A stretch of 63,060 bases of DNA, filler included, from Bigelowiella natans CCMP2755 (GCA_000320545.1; 8 parts of 8 records of this genome joined end to end with filler, not necessarily neighbours in it), one strand, 5' to 3'; shown: positions 14,225 to 27,046, counted from the first letter of the whole stretch. Notes: generated from the letters alone by a model not told the origin. A program made the numbers and translations.

Positions 14225-14299
14225 AAGTATACAGCTCGCCTTTTACCCCCCCCCCTCCCCTCCCCTTATATTTTCTATTGATTTATTTATTGATTTACA

Positions 14300-15650
14300 T
14301 ACGGGGTATCGGCCCAATTCTCGGTCGAAGGGGCCGATTATGCGGCCGTTCAGCGCGTTGTATGACCTAGTATGTAGCGTGTGTGTGTTTGTGCGCGCGT
14401 GTGTGTGTTTGTGCGTGTGTCGTTTGCCGGCGTTTGGAGAAGAGGAGTAGAGGAGGAGGAGGAGGAGGAGGAGGAGGAGGAGGAGGAGATAGAGGGAAAA
14501 TCGGTTGCAAAGTGATATTTCTCGTGCCATCCCTCAAGACAGCAGTAACATAGCATGATCGTTGATTGATTCTCCCACAACAACTGCGGGGTGGGTTAAA
14601 TCTAACCTTTGCACCGTGAGCCCCTTGACGACGACGAGAGTGCCTTCCTCGAGGTCTCCCTTTTCCGCAATATCATGCGCCCATTCATCCATTTCCTTCC
14701 AATAGTTCGGGTCGGATTCCTCGCCAAATACCATCCCGTCGTCGTAGAAGATGGAGCCTTGGTCTTGCTGCGCAGATTGCTCCCCCCCCCCCCCAACCTC
14801 CTCTCCATTCTGATCGAGAATCCCATTGCCTTCTCCCTCAACTCTACCTCGCTGAGAAAGCATATCATCCGTCTGCCCGACTTCATCGTTGATGCCCCCC
14901 CCCTTATCATTGCCCTCGCTGACGTTTATACTGTTGCTATTGTTGTCGCTGTCGTTGTTTTTGTCATCGTTTTGCTCCCCCCCCCTCGCCCCCGCCTCCC
15001 TCCTCCTCCTTTCTTCTCCGAGAGCGAAGAACTGATCCAATTCACTGGGAAAGTTCTCTCGCGGCCTGGTGGGGTGGGGAGGATGGGCAATGCGCAGATG
15101 GTAGCATTATTGAGGCTCACACAATGAAATATTTTCTATGCTTGCAACGTTGTGCGACGGTAGTAGCGGAAACACCGAAGATGCCTCTTCACCCAACGAC
15201 ATCATAGCGGTCGTTGAAGAACATAACGGCATCATCGGGTTTGTTTGCTGTTGTTGCCAACAATTCATCCTGAGGGATGTTACGCTTGCGGCTTGTGCTA
15301 CGACAAAAGGAGAATGTCAGGAAGGTAGGTCAGGCTGTACCGTAGGCGTTGTCGCCCTCGTGCTGCAGATGCTTTCTTCCGACGTTTCGAAGGCTTCGAA
15401 GCGGTCTTTTGACTGGCCCTCTTTTGCCCTTCTGTTCCTTTGGATATAAACAACGTTTGCCTTCAACTTATCGCGGGAGAGCATCTGCCAGTCGTCTTCT
15501 CAATACGCACATTACAACAACTGAGGAGAAGGACGCGAAAGCTTGGTTACCGAAAGCACCTGGTGAGTGAGGGTTCATAAAATTCTCGAGATCAGCAGAG
15601 GCTGATGAGGAAGAAGATGAGCAAGAACAAGTGCATTCTCCACAGCAACC
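14300..15650 (-). CDS. Acidic low-complexity protein with SH3/KOW-like motif (3'-truncated by contig end)
   Basis: ORF 14534-15040 is acidic and spliced to LEEGTLVVVKGLTVQR|SYNALNGRIIGPFDRELGRYP, a G..V.v.GL....lNG..G motif common in algal proteins. 5' end uncertain. Confidence 0.5.
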
Positions 15651-15791
15651 ATCGCCATAACCGTCGCCAAGATTGTCGTTGGACGAGTGCTTTTGGTTTC
15701 CTACTTCTGAGTGTTGATGAAAATTGTAAGATGAGACTTGAACCGCCCCCAGGATGGCAAAGATTACGTCAAAATACATCTTATATGTAAT

Positions 15792-17230
15792 TTAACAGTG
15801 TTTAGGGAGTTTGGCCAGACCGCGCTGAAGCACTGACTGTGCATTGCGCCGCCCCTCATCAATAATCGTCCCATCATTCTGGGGGAGATCCGCCGCTCCA
15901 CAGTCCCTCTTTCGCTGCAAATATCGACGAAAAACTAAGTTTGCGGGTGTGATTTGATCCATAGTTTTGTCCTCCATTGTTTGGGGATGCATTTTGACTT
16001 AAGTATATTGTATTTAGACAGCCTCTTTCCACATCAAATGGTAGTAGTAGTAGTAGCAGTGAGGGGAAGGAGAGGAGGTTTCAAACGATACTGACGTCTG
16101 AAGCAGTATGTTTTTTTGTTTACCCGTGTTGCGGAGGAACTCGCAACCGTATCGGCTTTCCATCAAATCGACTCTGAGGCTTCCAGAGTGGAGAGTAATG
16201 CGTATCATCATTCTTAAACTGTTCCTCATAAGACCTGTGTGGCGAGACGTGTGAATATTGCTCTCTTTTGATTCCTACTGGTTCGATAATGCAGTTTCGC
16301 TGTCTTATTAAAATTGGAAGAGGTCTCGGTGAAACTCTGCTCGAAAAATGCAACATCCAGAATCTCCCTCACCTCGAGGTCGGGCTTGCTGCCTCCGAGA
16401 ACGCCAGAGCAGTGAATACAAGCAACATAGAGTCCCCGACACTGCAGACAACGGTGTTTAGGGTTGATCAAACTGCGTGCACAGCCTGCAAAAATCCTTC
16501 CATACCTATTGCCTGCTGACCCTAGCCCTGGGCGACTACGAAGCATGTGGAAATGGGGCTGAACCCTTCCTTTGGCCGCATTGGCATCCGCAACAAGTCA
16601 TGCGGCGGAGGGAATTCCGCAGCGTGCTGTCGACTCCTTCGCCGGCTGTCGGCGAAATCTTGATCGTGATGTTAGATCAATATTCAAGCGCAAAATATCT
16701 AATGACATACATTAGAACACAGCGAATCGCTCCCCTTCGGAATCTGCAGACGCAATGAGAATGGAGCATGGATCCTTCGGTCAAGTCTCCCTCGGGAAAC
16801 TGCCTTGATTCTCGATCGCGAAGCGACTGTTGTTCGATGCAGGAGAGTCACAAATGCCCGTTGTTTCCCGTTATTACCGGTTATTTCCCCATCGATTTTC
16901 TACCAGTTTCTAAGAGTTTCTAGGAGAGCGAATCTGCAACGCCCCCCCACCTTGGAGCGTCCCCGTCGGGAAAGGCGCCCACCGAATCTTCATCCACATC
17001 TTCATCCTGCAACCTCCACGCGAAAAATCTGATGTGGTACACACATGAAAACTCCAGAGCACAGTGCTTTGTGTGGACGAGTTGATCTTGAACAAGCGTG
17101 CAGCAAACAAAAGGCTGTCGAAGAGTGGATCTGAAGGAATCTTAGGAGCAAGCAGATTGAAAATGATGGAAGGAGTGGGGTATCGTCAACACTGATCACC
17201 ACAGGAGATTTGTTTGAAACAATGTCCATG
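15792..17230 (-). CDS. Hypothetical spliced protein
   Basis: Protein-like open segments (GVLGGSKPDLEVREILDVAFFEQSF; SYEEQFKNDDTHYSPLWKPQ; MDQITPANLVFRRYLQ). Family not recognised. Confidence 0.3.
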
Positions 17231-19741
17231 AAATGTGAACTGCGAAATGCATCATTCTGCCTTAGCATTCGATTTCGATCAAAGATTGAGTGGTGCTCAA
17301 ACGCTCAAACCCAATTCGACTGTCTTCACAGAACGCTTCCATAAGGATGAAACAACGATGTACATTCTAAAGTGTTGCTTCAATTTAAATTTTGGACAAG
17401 ATATCATTAATTGCGATGAATCTGTGTACGTGACAAAATGAATCTCAGAAGCTGTGCATCGTCGCAATGCGAATGCGAACCAGACGAAGTGATGAGCGCT
17501 CGCGCATCTCATCATCTGGCTGTCGCAACAGGCATGGTGCATAACCAGATCATCCCATTTGTCATCAGTAGCACAGCATAAAGCATTCATTGAGTCTTTG
17601 CTACTAGCTCAACGCGTTGGCACACACGCACAGCACCGACTAACTAACGTGACAATGAATTGACCCGTGGTCATGCACATTTGCAATTACACAGTGAACA
17701 GTAATGTAACGTCTTCTTTTTGTTCAGTGCATCTAATATTTCATCGGTCACATCATTGTTGATGATTATTGTAGCATGTTTTTGTGACATGGTGCAAAGC
17801 AGAAACATTGAGATTCATGGACCATGACAATATTTGATCTCTAGCGTAGATGGCAGTGGGTAGATGATGGCCTCAGACATATACAACGATGATTGCTTCA
17901 CGCATCATACATAAGCATAAATTTACTAAATATTTGTGCGTATGACCATGCATATTCCAGGTTTGGACAAAGATTGCCTCTTATTTCAACGTTAAAAACC
18001 GTCTTGGTCAAGCGCTAATTCCTCGCTTGTTCTCAGTATCACGGATAATACATAGAACAGCAGGAAGATCCATACAGATTTATGTGCATTTGTACGCACA
18101 GCTAAGATATCAATTTACTGACTTAAAAGTCGATGCTTATTCTCATCTATACAATGCTCATTTGCAGAATAAGTCGAGTCAAAATGACGTCAAGAATCCA
18201 CGCCGAGATTTGGCACGAGTAAAATTACCAAATAATCAATTTTTCTTGGTAGGAAATGCTGCAGCAGCACCTCCTGCGAGACGTGAAGAGAAACCTTTTC
18301 AATCATTATCGTGCATATGAGAAACATATCTACAACTTGCGTTCGATATATTAATTTATTACAGATTAAGATTTACCTTGCTGCGCCGCAGCGAGATAGT
18401 TCGCATATCTGATGTAGAATAATATACGGTAAACGGGTAGAATGAAAGAAAAGGGTTGCAAATACTTACTTTGGGTCGGAAGCCATCTTGGACTTTATCA
18501 TATCCTCCTTGCGTCTCTGAGACATGATTTCGGATCTACGCCTGACCAGCACGTGTTCAAGAGTTGCTCTCATTTCACCTCCCTGATCGCTTCTCAAGAA
18601 CAGTTTTACCTTAAGGCCATGACTCCAACGATGGATGAGCACATGAAAAACGCCAAGGAAGCCTGAAAAAGACCATGCGTGAGTGTCGGCGATCAATTCG
18701 TCTGCAGAAGCTGACCGTACGCGAACACGTTACCTGCATACCATGCTCATAAGTGGAGCGCGAGAGTCTGGTTGACAGGATGGAGTGAGCACTGCGGAAG
18801 CCTGGGTACTTCCAAAACCCCATCGCCAGGACTCTTTGGCTAAAATTATGCAGGGACATGCTTGGCCGTGGGCAATCAAGCTATTTTGTGTAAATATATC
18901 CGTTCTCCGGGTCCCTATAAGAAAATTGAAGAAACAAAGAATATAAAAACGTTGTGATCCGTTCGAACTATACTGGCGTGACTCATCCTGAATGCAGGAA
19001 AGAATTGCATTTATGTTGTTCTGCACATTCCCTCTAATCAACTTGATGCCCCCAAAAATCATGATGATACACGCTAAACCTAACCCAAAATGTTACAGAT
19101 CCTGACTTCTCAAACCTTAACGCAAGTGCTGTCGACGACTGGAGCACCACCACCGACAGAAAAGAACAAAGCAGCCGGGAGGAGGGCTGCGATGGGTTCG
19201 TAGGATGTGCGACCAAACGACAGCGACAGATATTTTCCGGCAAAATATCATAAAATCCCCTTGAAAAAGTATAGGACGACAATTGTAATGTCATCTCTTT
19301 CGAAAAGCTACGAGAATCGTAGGTTATTTCTCGTAGCAAGCACCTCTAAGACAGCCTTCCAAACCGAAAACGGAGCCGAAGAATGGCTGGATGTGGTGGC
19401 TCGTGCTGGAACGTACTGCAAATATCATATGCGACAAGAAAGAGGCAGGCCTCAGGGCGAAAGAGCGGGAGAATTTCGACTTTGAAGGGAAAATCGTGAT
19501 AATTACATGCGATTTCTTTCCTACGACAAAGGACAAACACTGCCTCGGAACCCGTTTCAGCGCCACGTTCCATTGTCGATACCCCCAACCCCCCCCTCTC
19601 TGGGACCAGTGAGCTGCACCACGACGGCGAGGAGGCGCGTGTTATATCTGCCGAGATATGCTTCACCTTAAGCGTCCAAGCGTTTGTAGACGTTCTAGTG
19701 TCCTTTTTCTCGATTATTTGGCAGGGATCCAATAAAAAAGG

Positions 19742-22361
19742 ATGCCAACTATTTCTGGAAGAGAGAAGGAAGACGGAATTCGGATCTTCTCGGTCACAGC
19801 GCTTGCATGCTGCCTTGGCCTGATTAATCTGGTGTGCATCTCCAATATGACAATGGCGCAGCAGGAGGAGAAGTCTATGGTAATGCTGCCGGCGATGAAA
19901 AGTCATCCTAAATGGAACGCCTATGGCAACAGCGGGATGATACCGAGAAATAATAAACGAGTTTTCGGAAGGACATTACGACGCCTCCGCTCTCGGGGAC
20001 CACAAGATATATTTAGGACTAAGGGGTCGATGCGAATGCGGCAAAAGCGCAGTGTGACTTTTGCTGAGAGTGAGGGGGGTGTGCGTTTTCCGAGGCATTT
20101 GGACCCTGCTTTTGACGAAGACCAAACGACACAAGGAAATCGACTTGTATTCCAGGTTACTCCTATTAAAACGACACACGATCCAATGCACACGATTAAA
20201 TCCTATCTGTATGCCAAAATACCCTCATCTCAACTATCGTTTCCGTCAGGACGATCATTTGTCCATTTTCTACAAACCAAACGGTAAGTTTAGGTTGCTC
20301 ACGACGGCTTTCTTTCGACGGCCTCTTAGCAAATAGTGATATAAAATTTAAGGGTTAGATGAAGTTTTAGGACTAATTATCGACGATTAGCATTCGGTGA
20401 AGAATTAGAAAAATCATGAGATTCGGCAACGGAATCGTCATCGTCATCGTCCTCGTCATCGTCATCGTCCTCGTCATCGTTATCATCCGCACGATTGTCC
20501 ACAAATTGAACCTATTCGTCAATGCAGACTGGAGCTTAGAACTCCTCCGTACTGAACATGGTTATGTGCTTACGTTAACACACACACAGGGGTAAGTGTG
20601 CAAGGAGAGTTTGAGAAGGAAGGCATTCCTCCAGCCTATGCACTCGCCAAATCATACGGAGGCCTGGTAGGCTCATTGTGATCTACACCTCAAGATGGCC
20701 ATAAGCATTGCCATCTCCCCCCCCCCCTTCTCTTAGGTCATTTTTCCTGACACAGTAGCTTCCTCGAAATGCTTGAAACGCGCTCGACCGAACATGACCT
20801 TTGAATGGCATGCGGTGGTAGTAGTGCATTATTTTAAACCTCCACCCCCCCCCCCCCCCTCCCTGATTATTAGCTTCTGCCCCCTATTCTAACCCGGTTA
20901 GGTAGATGGATCCCCGCCGAAGAACTGGGATCTGAAGGCTGTATCATTAGATGATAATGCCTGCGAGCAACCATCCTTCACAGTTCTGGAAGCAAAAGTC
21001 GTCTCGCAGGTGGGGTTGCGGGGAGGCCCATCTCCGTTTCTGTTGTTATATAAAATGCACTCTCATGCCCCCTCCTCCCTCTACCTTGGCATGCGAAATG
21101 TTTGCTAAGCAAGAAGAAACTCACGAGCTTGATGCGCCGCTTGAAACATCGATCATTCCCACACCTTTATGACTGAAGATTAAGCCTTCTATGCAAAATA
21201 ATAAGAATTGATCACCATCATCGTCAGACCTGGTGTTCGCCACATTTATTCTCCTCGTACAAAAGAAGCTCACACCTCGCTCCCCCCCTCCCCAAACTAT
21301 GGTTTCGGTTACTACCCCCCTCTCCCTCTCCCTCTCCCTTTTTCTCTGTCGTTCGGTCCGGAAAGGCTTCGAGCTGGGGCCGAGGCGCGCTGTCTACCGT
21401 TCTGATCTCCACACATGTGCCTGGCCACCCCCTCTCTCAGGCTAGGTGCTTCTAACGACTGTCATATCGCTGCCGTCAGTGCCATACTTTTCGCCGCAAT
21501 GTCATCACTCGCCACAGCAGCACGATTGCAGGCCCGCCCCCCCGCCCTTTCCCCTCAGCTCCAAAAGATGTTAGGGGGGAGGGGGGGGGGAGTCGCTGCG
21601 TTATTCGTCTAACCGATGATGCGGTTATGTCATCCTAACAAATTCAGGGTAACAGACACGTACGCTATGGTAAACGTCGTCGCGAAGGAGGTCTCTCGAA
21701 TATCAGACATAGAGAGGAGTATCATTGCCCAAAGCATGGAGAGTGTTACTTGTGACGTGCTCAGTGATGGTTCTCATCATTTTCATCCTCCTCCTCCTCC
21801 TCCTCCTTCTCCTCGCTTCTAGCTGATCAGGTCTCTCAGTGTGGGGGGGCATCCTGTGGTTAGCGGAGGTGAATATAGAAGCTCTATAGTGAGCTAGAGC
21901 AACAGCGACGAGAAATGACGACAAGAAGAAGAGGATAATGAAGTGTCCCTCTATATTGATAGGCGGGAGTCGTAAAGATGGCCTCAGAGCTCTCCGTGGA
22001 GGCGCCGCTAGAGGGGTGAAGCACCACCAAATCTACCCTTTTCTGAAGAAAAGAAGCTGACGTTCTCCCAACGATTCAACCCTCCTTCTCCCTCCTCCCT
22101 CCTCCCTCCTCCCCTTCTTCTCTTCCGAAGATGTACCTAGCCTTGACCGGCATTGAGCTGCATGGTTACTTGTCCGCGATGATGAAATGCGAATCGGCGC
22201 TTGCGGGGAGAGGGGCTGCGCCTGTGCAAGAGTGGGTGGAGGGGGCAGCCACGAGAACGGGGCATGGCGAGGATGATGATATCTTACGTGTCCAAGTGCA
22301 GACCCCAGCAAAGTTTGGGCGAATGCTGTTAAGGGAAGTGAGTATTTCTCTCTCCCCCCCG

Positions 22362-22398
<37 letters not shown>

Positions 22399-23826
22399 TC
22401 TCTCTCTCTTTCTTGCCGAGACAATGCGATTGTTATGGAGTATAGCCAACTCTTTGTATCACTTATGAAAACGAGGTGACTGAGAACAGCGTCATCACCT
22501 TCAATCACATCATCATAACCTTCATCTTCTTCATCATTTTCATCATCATCATCACAATCATCATCATTGTAATCATTGTCATCGTAGACGTTGTCAATGA
22601 CAGCAATATGAATTTTGGCTTAATTATTAAGGCGCGCTTTGCCCTGAAGCAGCGGAGAAGGAACGCGAAAGAGGTCGTCCCTTTGGCGATTCGTCTGACA
22701 CAAACAAGGCTTGCTGTTTGCCATTTTTGCCTCGGAGTGCATGCATTGAAATACAACAAACGAACAACGAAGAGAAACCTGTGAATACACGTGTACACGC
22801 ACGCACGCGCACATAGCTTGTCCCTGTAATATATAGGGGAGGATGCTGCAGGACCTCTTCTCCTCCCTCAAGCTTCAAGACTTATCGAAGACTTATGCAG
22901 AGGAGCCTGGGGATCATGTGGGAAACCACTCCGAATACGTGCGTATACACGGCTAGTTTTAGGAAGCATGCGAACGTGAGGGATCGTTGTTTTCTACTGC
23001 GAAATTTAAACATTGACATAGAAAACACACACACAATCTGAAGACCTTTCATCGTCGAGATAAGGCTATGAATTAGTGCTTCTTGTGCTTTAATCAGACT
23101 CGAAAAATGCATGCCTTGGGGCTGCAGAGGTATCTTCTCTCTCTCCCCATCTCTCTTTTCCTTCTCTCCCCCTTTCTAATGTGTGCCTGTATATATATAT
23201 ATATATATATATTTATTTATTTATGTATATATTCTATCTGTATTCTCCTGCTCATAGACTATTCACTCATCACTTCCCCCTCTTTAGATTAGGATCTGTG
23301 GAGGCCAGAGGAATACTAGACGCTCTCGGAATTCGGCAGCCTGAAACGTGTTTTGCAATCGACTCAATCGGCAGTTTGCTGGTATATATACGCCTACACT
23401 CTCTGCTGTCAAATTTTGCCGCATTTCGTCTCACGAAGTTGCAGAAGAAGAAACGTCGGAGAGACATGTAGAGAAGTGCGTTGATAAGATTCGCCTCCGC
23501 TCCATCCGCTGCGGCGTATCAATTAACGAAACATCTTCGGGAGCCATGTTTCAAGAGTCGTTTTTGAGCCATTTTGTTGCTATTGTTGTTGTTGTTTTTG
23601 ATGTTGTCGTTGAAAATCTCTCTTCGGCTGTTTTCTGTGCCCAAGCCGGTGTGTTGTGACTGACAGATGCATGCGACAGCAATTATACACAGGTTATGTA
23701 GCAAGAAACCCTCGTCAGAGCCGACGGTATGAAATGCGATGATTTATTCAGCCGTAGGAGGGAGGGGGGGGGGGGGGAGAGCTCATGCCGAAGAGGAAGA
23801 AATCAAATACACACACACACACACAC

Positions 23827-23866
<40 letters not shown>

Positions 23867-24279
23867 AAAAAAATCGTGACTGTCCTCTTTCTTCTTCAGC
23901 TTCTCTTCTCTCCCTTTCTTCACCGCCTCACTCTCACAACGACCAACGGTTGCCCATATGCGTCTCCCCCCCCTCCCCCTCCCTTACAAAAGGATCCTCC
24001 AAGCCCCTCATACAGCCAACATTGTTGCTGCTCACGTTTCGGCTTTCCTAGAGACTCCGGTCGTCGCCAGGCCTCTGCAGCTCCGAACTTCTTTCTTCGG
24101 GGGCCACGTTCAAGAAAAACAGAGTCTTTTTACCAAGGGGGTAGGAGGGAAGATAGCGATAGAGCCGGTGGCCCTTGGCCAAGACAGGTCGGCTCTCCCC
24201 CTCCCCTCCCATTTTTACTCGCTCCGTCGTCGCCAACATGTATAAATAAAATATAGATTTACACAAACACACACACACG

Positions 24280-24326
<47 letters not shown>

Positions 24327-24575
24327 TATGCGAACGATATTGATTAGACAAGCGAGAACTATCACGCGCACAGCCTTTTTCATCGCAAGTCAATACTAAC
24401 GGGTGTGTGGCGTGCATAACAGGTCTCAACACAGCGAAGTTGTGTCGATGAATTGGGTGCTGGAACGGATACGGAAGGAGCTCTGCAACCGTAGCAGCGA
24501 CAGCAGCTGCGAACAAGAACTACGGAATGTCACAGGATGCGTAGACGTCTTCATTACCCATATTGTACGTTAGAG

Positions 24576-24619
<44 letters not shown>

Positions 24620-24697
24620 TAAATATGGCAATTGAGCACTTAAATGTGGGAATTGAGCACTTTCGTAGCTCTTTCGGTGATGTAGGGTTCGGGTTTC

Positions 24698-24733
<36 letters not shown>

Positions 24734-24980
24734 GCTTTGCTTTCCTGACGGATTGATTGGTGTGAAACACGGCTAGCCCTGCGTCTCCTGCATGGGGGCT
24801 TTTGTCCAGATGATGGTGCTGCTGCCTAATGTGGAGATTCGTGTCGGATGGGAAGACTGGAGGGACTTCCAGAAACGCATTCCTCCTCCTCCTCCTACTC
24901 CTCCTACTCCTCCTACTCCTTCTGCTGCCAGGCTACGACAGGACGCAATGATTCCAGCGCAGCTAGCGAATGAGCTGTAG
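19742..24980 (+). CDS. Leader + degenerate RluA-like pseudouridine-synthase domain + C-terminal Zn-dependent deaminase (about 20 exons)
   Basis: A continuous in-phase GT-AG exon chain can be built. RluA-like motifs: LVFQ|DDHLSIFYKPN, AYALAKSYGGL|VIFP, FEWHAV|VDGSPP, LIRSLSVGGHPVVSG, MYLALTGIEL..VQTPAKFGRMLLRE. Deaminase: exons 23993-24187, 24423-24564 and 24777-24980 give QDR|SQHSEVVSM...VTGCVDVFITHI|PCVSCMGAFVQMMVLLPNVEIRVGWE. Confidence 0.7.
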
Positions 24981-26171
24981 CGAAACCATGTCCTGGAAAG
25001 GAGATGCATGCAGCATCAATTTGCACTTCAATTGGGTGCGCATATATCTAGCAGATCTAAGTAGATAGATGTGGCATCTGCATGTGAGACGGGTGTGATG
25101 AGACATGACTTACATATTCTCAATATTCGCATCCTAATGTAGACGTATGCAAAGCGGCGACTACAGCGCTAAGATTGGGTTTGTTTCTTTGGACAATTGT
25201 GCATGGCACGTGACACGCGAGAGCGCAAGCAAGCTGTGAACGTACTGCACGTAGCAGCACTAGATGGTAAAAAATAAATACATAAATGCCGCACCGCACC
25301 AGGGACGACACCCTCGCTTGCGCTACGGCGATGCGCTAAACCTTAGGAACAAGCTAGCTTCGCTATGATGCTCATTGCCACAACTCCTTTTCACCTTTGA
25401 GAGGTTCTCAGGCGTGTACTCTCGACATCTCATGAGGCTAGACGGGAAGAAAAACATGACTCGATGGAGGACGTCATAAAATGTTCAAAGGAACCAATGA
25501 GTAATGCAATGTCATTTCTATGAAATATTCTAACATACTGGAAACGCCACACCCGACAGCACATGCTAGCATGAGGAAGACCATTGAACAAAATTTTGAT
25601 TGCATCCGTCTTGCACTCGACGTACAGCGCCATACATTCAACCACAATGTAGATACGATGTTCACAAGTCAGCTAGAAGAAGTGTCCCCGCGGCAGTGGC
25701 TCAAAGCTGCACAAGTGCATGCGCACAATCGCAGAAAGCGAGACATGCTGCACAATCGCTTGCTAATTAATGAACGACTATGTGACGTAGCAGCAACAGG
25801 CATGCAAGACCAGAAAAATATCATAAAAGCTCACTCGAGCATGTAGTACACACACATCTAGACATGGGTACTCGTCTCTAAATAAATCGATCATTGTTGT
25901 GACTACCCATGTAGCGCTCCGCAGAGAAAGTATGTACGAGCACATATTTCACTTTCCTAGCTTTATGGTGCATCATGTTTGCGCTTTCTCAACGTTATCA
26001 TTCGTTTTACCAAGTGTTAAAAGTAATAGCATTCATCAAGGGGCTGCTGTCAATATCATCCAAGCAGCTGAATCATATGCACGCCTGCTAACCATTCTTA
26101 TGTGAAGGAGAGGCAGTTCTTGGTTCATTTCTTCTCCATGAAATCATGTCTCTTCACTGCTTTCGAAGCTC

Positions 26172-26795
26172 TCATTTCCTTGTACGCTTTTCCTTTGTAG
26201 TGTCGACCTCCTCAGTCTTGCCGCGTCTTCTTTTTCTGCGGAATATATGCGAAATGGGCCGTTAGATTCGATGTGTGAATTGTTAGATGGGCCTGCTCCC
26301 GACAGACACCATATCACCAGTGTAGTAGTTCCGTACATGTATTGCCGCCGACGCATGGTTCATTCATAAAGCCAACTTTTTTTTGCACAATGAATTTCCA
26401 CGAAGGTGACCACGCCAAAAGAGAGCAGAGGCAGCAGCATCAGCAGCATCACACCACATCATCACGTCACACGTCACACATATCAGCAGCAGAGCATCAT
26501 CTATCACACCGAACCTTATTTTCGTAGTTTGTTGTTTGCAATCGTCTGCTTCATCGTCAGCGCCAGTGGCGAGGTCTTTGCCGTTGCTATTGTTCTCCTC
26601 CTTCTTTCCATCCGTTATGTGCTCCTCCTCTTCCTTCGTCTCTTCCTCCTTCTTGTCTTTGGGGACTTGCTTCCATTCTCCTACCATCCACTCGTGCGCT
26701 TTGACTTGCTGCAGTGTGCATCTAGATCTGGGGTCAACGGTCATTAGCCGTTTGATGAGGTCCTTCGGAGCCTTCGAAGGAGCCCGCGATATCAT
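26172..26795 (-). CDS. Ser/Thr protein kinase, C-terminal end (5' lost at contig end)
   Basis: Subdomain XI: KDLIKRLMTVDPRSRCTLQQVKAHEWM, then an acidic tail and a basic last exon (KRRRGKTEEVDTTKEKRTRK*). Confidence 0.75.
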
Positions 26796-26935
26796 GTAAT
26801 AACAACAACAGCAGCAACAACAACAACAATAACAACCCAGATAACATGTGTGAGAAGCATCGTTTCGGTGTTCTTTATCTTCTTTCAAGGAAATTCTCCC
26901 ATTGGGATCACTAGCTTGCTTACTCTCCCCCTCCC

Positions 26936-26993
<58 letters not shown>

Positions 26994-27046
26994 TAAGACA
27001 TACACACACACACACGGCTGCAGCTAGATTAATGACCATACCCCGC

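Follow-up and report, generated by a model that had tools for sequence, protein, structure and literature searches.

A spliced gene of Bigelowiella natans for a candidate fusion of a decayed RluA-type synthase module with a toxin-type zinc deaminase

The window analysed here (63,060 nt, filler included) consists of eight parts of eight records of the genome of the marine protist Bigelowiella natans CCMP2755 (GCA_000320545.1) joined end to end; all positions are counted from its first letter. We found that positions 19562–25166 on the + strand constitute one expressed gene with 18 exons, encoding a protein of 666 aa, P0004. As we read it, P0004 would consist of a leader, a decayed module of the RluA type of pseudouridine synthases, a linker, and a toxin-type zinc deaminase acting on a polynucleotide; taken as a whole, this reading appears to us about evenly poised between right and wrong. 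The two domain assignments, RluA relic and toxin-type zinc deaminase, are supported by convergent, sub-threshold evidence from sequence comparison; as to substrate, compartment and activity, we only infer them.

The gene structure is given by transcripts. The open reading frame (ORF) of exon 1 (19742–20284) matches a protein from MMETSP, P0003 (285 aa), with 93% identity over 82% of the query, and the 90% cluster of P0003 also includes P0004. The latter is encoded by two JGI complementary DNA (cDNA) contigs, L001 (2367 nt) and L002 (2283 nt); they come from different samples and both have 100% identity to the window. Junctions were placed by blastn and by exact mapping of L001 onto the window, which resolved this contig into 18 exons on the + strand between 19562 and 25166, with all 17 introns of the GT-AG type; the exons joined are exactly L001 and their translation is exactly P0004. 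The coding sequence is a single ORF running from the ATG at 19742 to the TAG at 24978–24980, with an in-frame stop (19733–19735) two codons 5′ of the ATG. We also observed that 20 sequencing runs from six studies contain 0.17–0.41 of the words sampled from 19500–25400; the spliced mRNA accounts for 2367/5901 = 0.40 of this interval and the top run reached 0.41, as would fit runs carrying processed mRNA.

An in-phase chain of GT-AG exons from 19742 to 24980 had been proposed in a sequence-only reading of this DNA, and the 100%-identical cDNAs bear it out, together with its landmarks: the exon at 22131–22337, closing at a GTGAGT donor; the peptide DDHLSIFYKPNG, which spans the junctions of exons 1, 2 and 3; and the motifs HSE (24430–24438) and PCVSC (24777–24791), both present in the transcript. 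The linker exons, left doubtful in that reading, were set by the cDNA at 22632–22673, 22837–22938, 23098–23129, 23288–23381 and 23680–23726. The reading had also suggested a check for a single transcript, and both modules were indeed found in a single ORF on L001 and L002; since one unbroken ORF covers both modules in two independent assemblies, the cDNA rules out two separate genes. A gene on the minus strand was rejected as well, that strand having just low-complexity ORFs. The parts of the gene are listed below.

19562..19741, + strand: 5′ untranslated region, from the start of exon 1 as far as L001 reaches (cDNA)
19742..20155, + strand: exon 1, coding part, residues 1–138; n-region, hydrophobic segment, basic stretch 36–134 and start of the RluA-like motif (LVFQ, from 20144)
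20250..20283, + strand: exon 2, 34 nt; DDHLSIFYKPN and the first base of the G150 codon, core of the putative RluA-type motif
20590..20666, + strand: exon 3; remainder of the G150 codon, then VSVQGEFEKEGIPPAYALAKSYGGL; YALA opposite the HRLD of RluA, no catalytic Asp
20737..20817, + strand: exon 4; ...FEWHAVV, aligned with the RluA motif KQYVARVWG
20902..21009, + strand: exon 5
21366..21445, + strand: exon 6
21648..21690, + strand: exon 7
21823..21868, + strand: exon 8; alternative 5′ splice site at 21830/21831, leading to the frameshifted 285-aa P0003
21963..22015, + strand: exon 9
22131..22337, + strand: exon 10, 69 codons (MYLALTGIELHG...MLLRE); end of the region that the sequence-only reading called RluA-like
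22632..22673, + strand: exon 11 (basic linker)
22837..22938, + strand: exon 12 (linker)
23098..23129, + strand: exon 13 (linker)
23288..23381, + strand: exon 14 (linker)
23680..23726, + strand: exon 15 (end of linker)
23993..24187, + strand: exon 16, residues 488–552; N-terminal deaminase-like part, predicted helix 1 and strands 1–2
24423..24564, + strand: exon 17; H555-S-E557 (24430–24438), predicted helix 2, Cys-containing insert and strand 3 (CVDVFITHI)
24777..24980, + strand: exon 18, coding part; P600-C-V-S-C604 (24777–24791), predicted helix 3, strand 4 and helix 4, (PPT)n tail, ANEL, stop at 24978–24980
24981..25166, + strand: 3′ untranslated region, as far as L001 reaches

The C-terminal module has an intact H-x-E and P-C-x-x-C set, H555-S-E557 and P600-C-V-S-C604, with 42 residues between the two motifs. 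In Pfam searches with the C-terminal piece the sole matches were to four families of the deaminase clan: APOBEC2 (E 0.07, 13.7 bits), APOBEC_N (E 0.08, 13.4 bits), PF00383 (E 0.09, 13.1 bits with a cut-off of 25) and SNAD4 (E 0.11, 13.0 bits). A phmmer search of PDB returned six weak matches, among them a deaminase of the trypanosome ADAT complex, 8aw3 (E 0.14; DMFVSHEPCVMC versus DVFITHIPCVSC), and a dCMP deaminase (E 0.28). Comparison with E. coli TadA by hhalign gave P 3.5e-4 over the region of strand 3 and helix 3 (DVFITHIPCVSCMGAFVQ versus TLYVTLEPCVMCAGAMIH). As the region had been picked for its motif, the controls were shuffles in which H, E, P, C and C kept their places; none of the 200 reached the real score of 27.1 (mean 16.7, maximum 25.7), and therefore the similarity to TadA exceeds the bare motif. 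A permissive alignment with TadA pairs HAE with HSE and PCVMC with PCVSC, in agreement with the intact deaminase motif claimed from the sequence alone.

A language-model search with residues 487–633 had as its best match an unnamed, mostly eukaryotic cluster of 183-aa proteins (0.94; 197 of the 256 features). The next neighbours were PF14424 Toxin-deaminase (0.89 and 0.88) and MafB19-like (PF14437, 0.87), with SCP1.201-like (PF14428), MsddA-like, Deam_C and OTT_1508 (PF14441) further down. These nearest named neighbours support, as a lead, the term ‘toxin-type’ used for the module before. In an AlphaFold2 model of the deaminase part, computed without an alignment, the succession of elements is helix 1, strands 1–2, helix 2, strand 3, helix 3, strand 4 and helix 4; at the low confidence of the model this succession fits the deaminase fold. 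We consider it very probable, on this sequence evidence, that the module belongs to the deaminase superfamily, and we incline slightly to the view that it is catalytically competent.

Between helix 2 and strand 3 there is an insert of ∼15 residues (within residues 573–593, 24484–24546) with three Cys (CNRSSDSSCEQELRNVTGC); it could serve as an additional metal site, form a disulphide, or cap the substrate as inserts do in other deaminase clades. The PPTPPTPPT tail is encoded by a (TCCTCCTAC)n repeat at 24881–24920. Two assignments were tried for the module and rejected: a TadA orthologue (no EPC glutamate, apparently no strand 5, no C-terminal helices) and a DYW-type deaminase (no match to PF14432).

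For the synthase-like module we compared residues 135–382 by hhalign with a profile of aligned E. coli RluA, RluD, RluC and TruC (profile A1) and obtained P values of 1.1e-3 to 1.8e-3 over 73–74 columns, with 29% identity. In the alignment LVFQDDHLSIFYKPNG lies on ILYQDDHIMVVNKPSG of E. coli RluA, ...SSKCLKRA on ...AERELKRQ, and FEWHAVVDG on KQYVARVWG; LVFQDDHLSIFYKPNG conforms to the N-terminal strand motif (I/V)xYxDDxhhhhxKPxG. The real score of 29.8 stood above those of all 300 shuffles (mean 13.4, standard deviation 2.3, maximum 22.3), and both the reversed sequence and the remaining two thirds of the protein produced background scores. In an independent language-model search with the whole protein the top three clusters were of the RluA family (PF00849 in 100% of members; 0.81, 0.77 and 0.77) and the ten best named matches all belonged to the PF00849 family or its clan; a method free of alignment picked exactly the family predicted beforehand.

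The catalytic segment HRLD-MATSG stands opposite YALA-KSYGG, and D64 of RluA faces Ala169 (alignment confidence there is low to moderate). No HRLD-like motif was visible by eye elsewhere in residues 135–400, where no pattern search was run. An RluA-type N-terminal motif accompanied by YALA in place of HRLD agrees with the earlier statement that the synthase is dead; as there is no recognisable motif with the catalytic Asp of HRLD, pseudouridine synthesis of the usual kind is not expected. Our assessment is that the module probably descends from an RluA-type synthase and lost its catalytic motif.

At the N-terminus, a mixed-charge n-region of 15 residues precedes a hydrophobic segment (residues 15–35, 19784–19846; Kyte-Doolittle 2.4 over 19 residues), the single one in this part of the protein, and residues 36–134 form a basic stretch with 20 K/R versus 9 D/E. 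A hydrophobic and Arg/Lys-rich leader had been noted from the sequence, and such a composition fits a signal peptide or anchor followed by a region resembling a transit peptide. At the other end the protein finishes with ...QLANEL (24966–24980), where ANEL matches the pattern [KRHQSA][DENQ]EL for retrieval to the endoplasmic reticulum (ER), expected by chance in ∼4e-4 of proteins as estimated from residue frequencies. Complex plastids, too, are reached via the secretory route.

The shorter P0003 (285 aa, ending in LIRRES) results from joining a GT donor located 38 nt upstream within exon 8 to exon 9 (21963). This splice shifts the frame onto a TAA and leaves P0003 without the rest of the synthase-like module and without the entire deaminase. 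Since P0003 differs from the window by G12R and K186E, it comes from another strain or allele. The representative of the 90% cluster is this truncated isoform rather than the 666-aa protein, which may explain that P0004 did not surface when exon 10 was searched against representative sequences, where just RCC1-like repeat noise was seen; short isoforms as representatives are a general trap for searches made exon by exon. Single exon pieces had neither Pfam nor PDB matches. Exact look-ups with the genomic ORF and with P0003 produced no match; word-index searches detected no homologue of whole P0004 or of its deaminase part, a metagenome scan found no homologue either, and NCBIfam, PADLOC and PHROGs yielded no matches. 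At the sensitivity of these searches P0004 is an orphan.

The architecture had been described as unrecognised, but it is not without precedent: the closest case, yeast Pus8/Rib2, has the same order, with an S4 domain, an RluA-family synthase and then the DRAP deaminase of the cytidine deaminase type (PMC5699540), and is also of similar size (PMC5699540). There are clear differences. The Pus8 synthase is active (on tRNA U32) and both domains of Pus8 are readily recognised, whereas P0004 has no HRLD; the N-terminus is an S4 domain in Pus8/Rib2 and a hydrophobic and basic leader in P0004. The Pus8/Rib2 deaminase is RibD-like and acts on a riboflavin precursor; in RibD-like deaminases, the yeast fusion included, the CxxC motif is interrupted by an insert that has a conserved His (PMC3239186), while P0004 has a plain, uninterrupted PCVSC and toxin-type neighbours. 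In TrcP of Vibrio cholerae an N-terminal deaminase with a long helical insert is followed by an active C-terminal RluA domain (PMC9553926), which is recognised with E 5e-74. TrcP and P0004 are alike in that one polypeptide has a domain of the cytidine deaminase fold and one of the RluA family, and in TrcP the non-catalytic parts tether the tRNA (PMC9553926). Still, P0004 has the reversed order and an RluA module without the catalytic motif, and for these reasons a C-to-pseudouridine relay is unlikely.

Toxin-type deaminases are the nearest named language-model neighbours of P0004 and also resemble it in its apparent C-terminal truncation, a feature typical of several clades; in a number of toxin deaminase clades the fold is truncated after helix 3 or strand 4 (PMC3239186). 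Protists of the genus Perkinsus carry toxin-clade deaminases with transit peptides (PMC3239186). The gene of P0004, in contrast, is spliced and eukaryotic, with no context of toxin delivery or immunity, and the profile hidden Markov models PF14424, PF14437, PF14428 and PF14441 do not match the protein. In the BURPS668_1122 clade, helix 2 is marked by RxxDxExK and helix 3 by CxxCxS, and truncation after helix 3 is frequent (PMC3239186); the apparent truncation of P0004 is similar and the language-model scores are 0.87–0.89, yet P0004 has HSE and PCVSCMG in place of the DxE and CxxCxS signature. TadA/ADAT2 show the best local sequence similarity, as does the deaminase of the trypanosome ADAT complex; unlike them, P0004 is without the EPC glutamate, apparently without strand 5 and without the pair of C-terminal tRNA-binding helices; it carries the insert of ∼15 residues described above, and TadA models give no match to it. 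We characterize the architecture of P0004 as a variant of a known fusion arrangement that lies outside the Pus8/Rib2, TrcP, TadA and BURPS668_1122 families.

The protein could be put together and work as follows. The hydrophobic segment and the Arg/Lys-rich stretch would take it into the secretory route. The decayed RluA module, having kept the N-terminal strand motif, would be unable to make pseudouridine in the usual way, and a linker of ∼100 residues would join this relic to the deaminase, a predicted zinc module of the cytidine deaminase superfamily with the full set of ligand and catalytic residues, nearest to bacterial toxin-type enzymes and with predicted helix 4 as its last element. 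P0004 would most likely act as a polynucleotide deaminase, on RNA more probably than on DNA: the substrate, presumably a structured RNA, would be gripped by the synthase relic and the basic segments, and the deaminase would carry out a C-to-U (or A-to-I) conversion. Binding of stem-loops, with one base flipped out, is natural to the RluA synthase fold. A more specific version, in which P0004 would be a protein-only, site-specific editor of organellar RNA with the dead RluA synthase as the recognition module of a domesticated toxin-type deaminase, is tentative and, in our judgement, unlikely; the relic would then offer the deaminase a selected C (or A) in a tRNA, rRNA or mRNA from plastid or mitochondrion.

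A number of observations weigh against the reading of P0004 as a fusion of an RluA relic and an active deaminase. The RluA signal is mostly the KPxG strand motif of 13–16 residues: with QDDHLSIFYKPNG held fixed, 7 of 200 shuffles matched the real score, and residues 151–215 alone gave P of about 0.1 with the RluA profile. It had been claimed that RluA-like motifs follow in the correct order; of this the first ∼75 residues of the module stood, with significant similarity, and the rest did not, residues 208–400 alone having P 0.16, equalled by 30 of 150 shuffles. The strings PGHPLSQAR, GGHPVVSGG and YLALTGIELHG are in the right order with respect to TGRxHQxR, GHPxxGD and LHA...hP, without statistical support, and exon 10 alone has no significant RluA likeness. 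With the whole protein and with residues 135–382, PF00849 and all NCBIfam RluA models gave no match at E up to 10, and no RluA-family match came from the phmmer search of PDB. On the deaminase side, the four Pfam families mentioned above are all matched far below their cut-offs, and the module seems, in the model, to be without strand 5, with the (PPT)n tail following helix 4. Language-model scores below 0.9 are to be taken as leads only. The AlphaFold2 models made without an alignment have a predicted local distance difference test score (pLDDT) of 33 (whole protein) and 40 (deaminase part); Foldseek with the latter returned nothing significant, APOBEC3G being at rank 2 with E 0.2. The searches described above brought up no homologue that could show conservation of the catalytic residues. 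Finally, ANEL would favour an ER or secretory location at least as much as a plastid one.

Indeed, P0004 could be a deaminase of the secretory pathway, either held in the ER by a signal or anchor and ANEL retention or secreted; as an enzyme resembling the secreted AID/APOBEC-like deaminases (SNADs) or as a domesticated toxin it would then mutate foreign DNA or RNA in defence or attack and would edit none of the organism's own organellar RNA. The single hydrophobic segment at 15–35 speaks for this, as do ANEL with its low chance expectation, the SNAD4 and APOBEC families among the weak Pfam matches and the toxin deaminases as nearest named neighbours; PMC5889660 describes secreted deaminases in algae and other eukaryotes. 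We find it distinctly improbable all the same, as it leaves the 100-residue basic stretch and the relic of an RNA enzyme unexplained, and the ER-retrieval pattern is short and prone to false positives. We would put at the same low level the possibility that both modules are relics, in a pseudo-enzyme serving as a non-catalytic RNA-binding factor or as a factor of ribosome or ribonucleoprotein assembly. Loss of HRLD in the synthase, apparent truncation of the deaminase after helix 4 and the high divergence of a protein with no relatives detected would all suit a pseudo-enzyme, and the Perkinsus deaminases with transit peptides were judged to be inactive RNA binders (PMC3239186). Still, the five residues for zinc binding and catalysis (H, E, P-C and C) are all kept at a spacing that can be aligned with TadA, which would be unexpected in a freely drifting relic, and toxin clades with the same point of truncation are active families (PMC3239186).

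Chance may have produced the motifs: P0004 would then be a lineage-specific orphan in which KPxG and HSE...PCVSC are accidental and neither domain is real. No curated model scores above threshold, both hypotheses were drawn from the same sequence on which they were tested, the candidate comes from very many windows read, and a single short motif makes up the bulk of the RluA signal. Nevertheless, two independent weak signals name enzyme families that are known as fused, shuffles that preserve the motifs still fall short of the real scores, and an alignment-free search among thousands of families recovered exactly the two predicted; we give this explanation little credence. Least probable by far, in our opinion, is a diverged protein of the Rib2/Pus8 type whose deaminase acts on the riboflavin precursor DRAP and whose fused synthase has decayed. 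Such a protein would share the domain order and similar size of Pus8/Rib2 (PMC5699540), and PF00383 is among the weak matches; against it, the His insert inside CxxC (PMC3239186) is absent from the uninterrupted PCVSC, hhalign with RibD in the profile did no better than TadA alone, the language-model neighbours are of the toxin type and not of the RibD type, and true homologues of Rib2/RibD are easily caught by Pfam, whereas P0004 is not.

We surveyed the piece around the gene, 14225–27046. It is eukaryotic in character and intron-rich, with GC content of ∼0.38–0.56, many microsatellites and ORFs all of at most 215 codons. Nearly every longer intron of the gene contains a microsatellite:

20434–20488, intron: (ATCGTC)n
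22364–22413, intron: (CT)n
22492–22586, intron: (TCA)n
23190–23232, intron: (TA)n
23829–23863, intron: (AG)n
24261–24323, intron: (AC)n(AT)n
24576–24626, intron: (TA)n
24701–24730, intron: (CT)n

At 22079–22126, likewise intronic, the CT-rich polypyrimidine tract precedes the exon 10 acceptor, and poly-C runs are present at about 20716–20727 and 20843–20860. Downstream, a protein kinase domain is represented by its C-terminal end (Pfam Pkinase, E 6e-4, profile positions 232–263 of 263) in an ORF on the minus strand (26367–27011); this ORF has a poly-Cys run and adjoins a (CT)n/(CA)n array at 26939–27015. The kinase gene is convergent with the deaminase gene and extends past the right edge of the piece. 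Upstream, a minus-strand ORF of 168 codons (14537–15040), acidic and Gly/Asn-rich, without a Pfam match, adjoins (GT)n at 14377–14420 and (GAG)n at 14442–14488; it possibly represents an exon from a neighbouring gene.

To our knowledge, fusions of synthase and deaminase occur in two forms only, Pus8/Rib2, where the two activities are unrelated, and bacterial TrcP, where they form a C-to-pseudouridine relay. If our reading of P0004 is true, it would add a third form, with the synthase solely an RNA-binding scaffold for a deaminase derived from a toxin, and one more independent case of bacterial toxin stock giving rise to an editor of nucleic acids in eukaryotes. Of interest for base-editing tools, it would in addition be a compact means, made of protein only, to direct a deaminase to structured RNA. 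The gene shows how such proteins go unnoticed, with no curated model for either domain and a truncated isoform representing the cluster. Judged by its sequence, P0004 is a credible candidate: it may be a new enzyme that edits bases in RNA or DNA.

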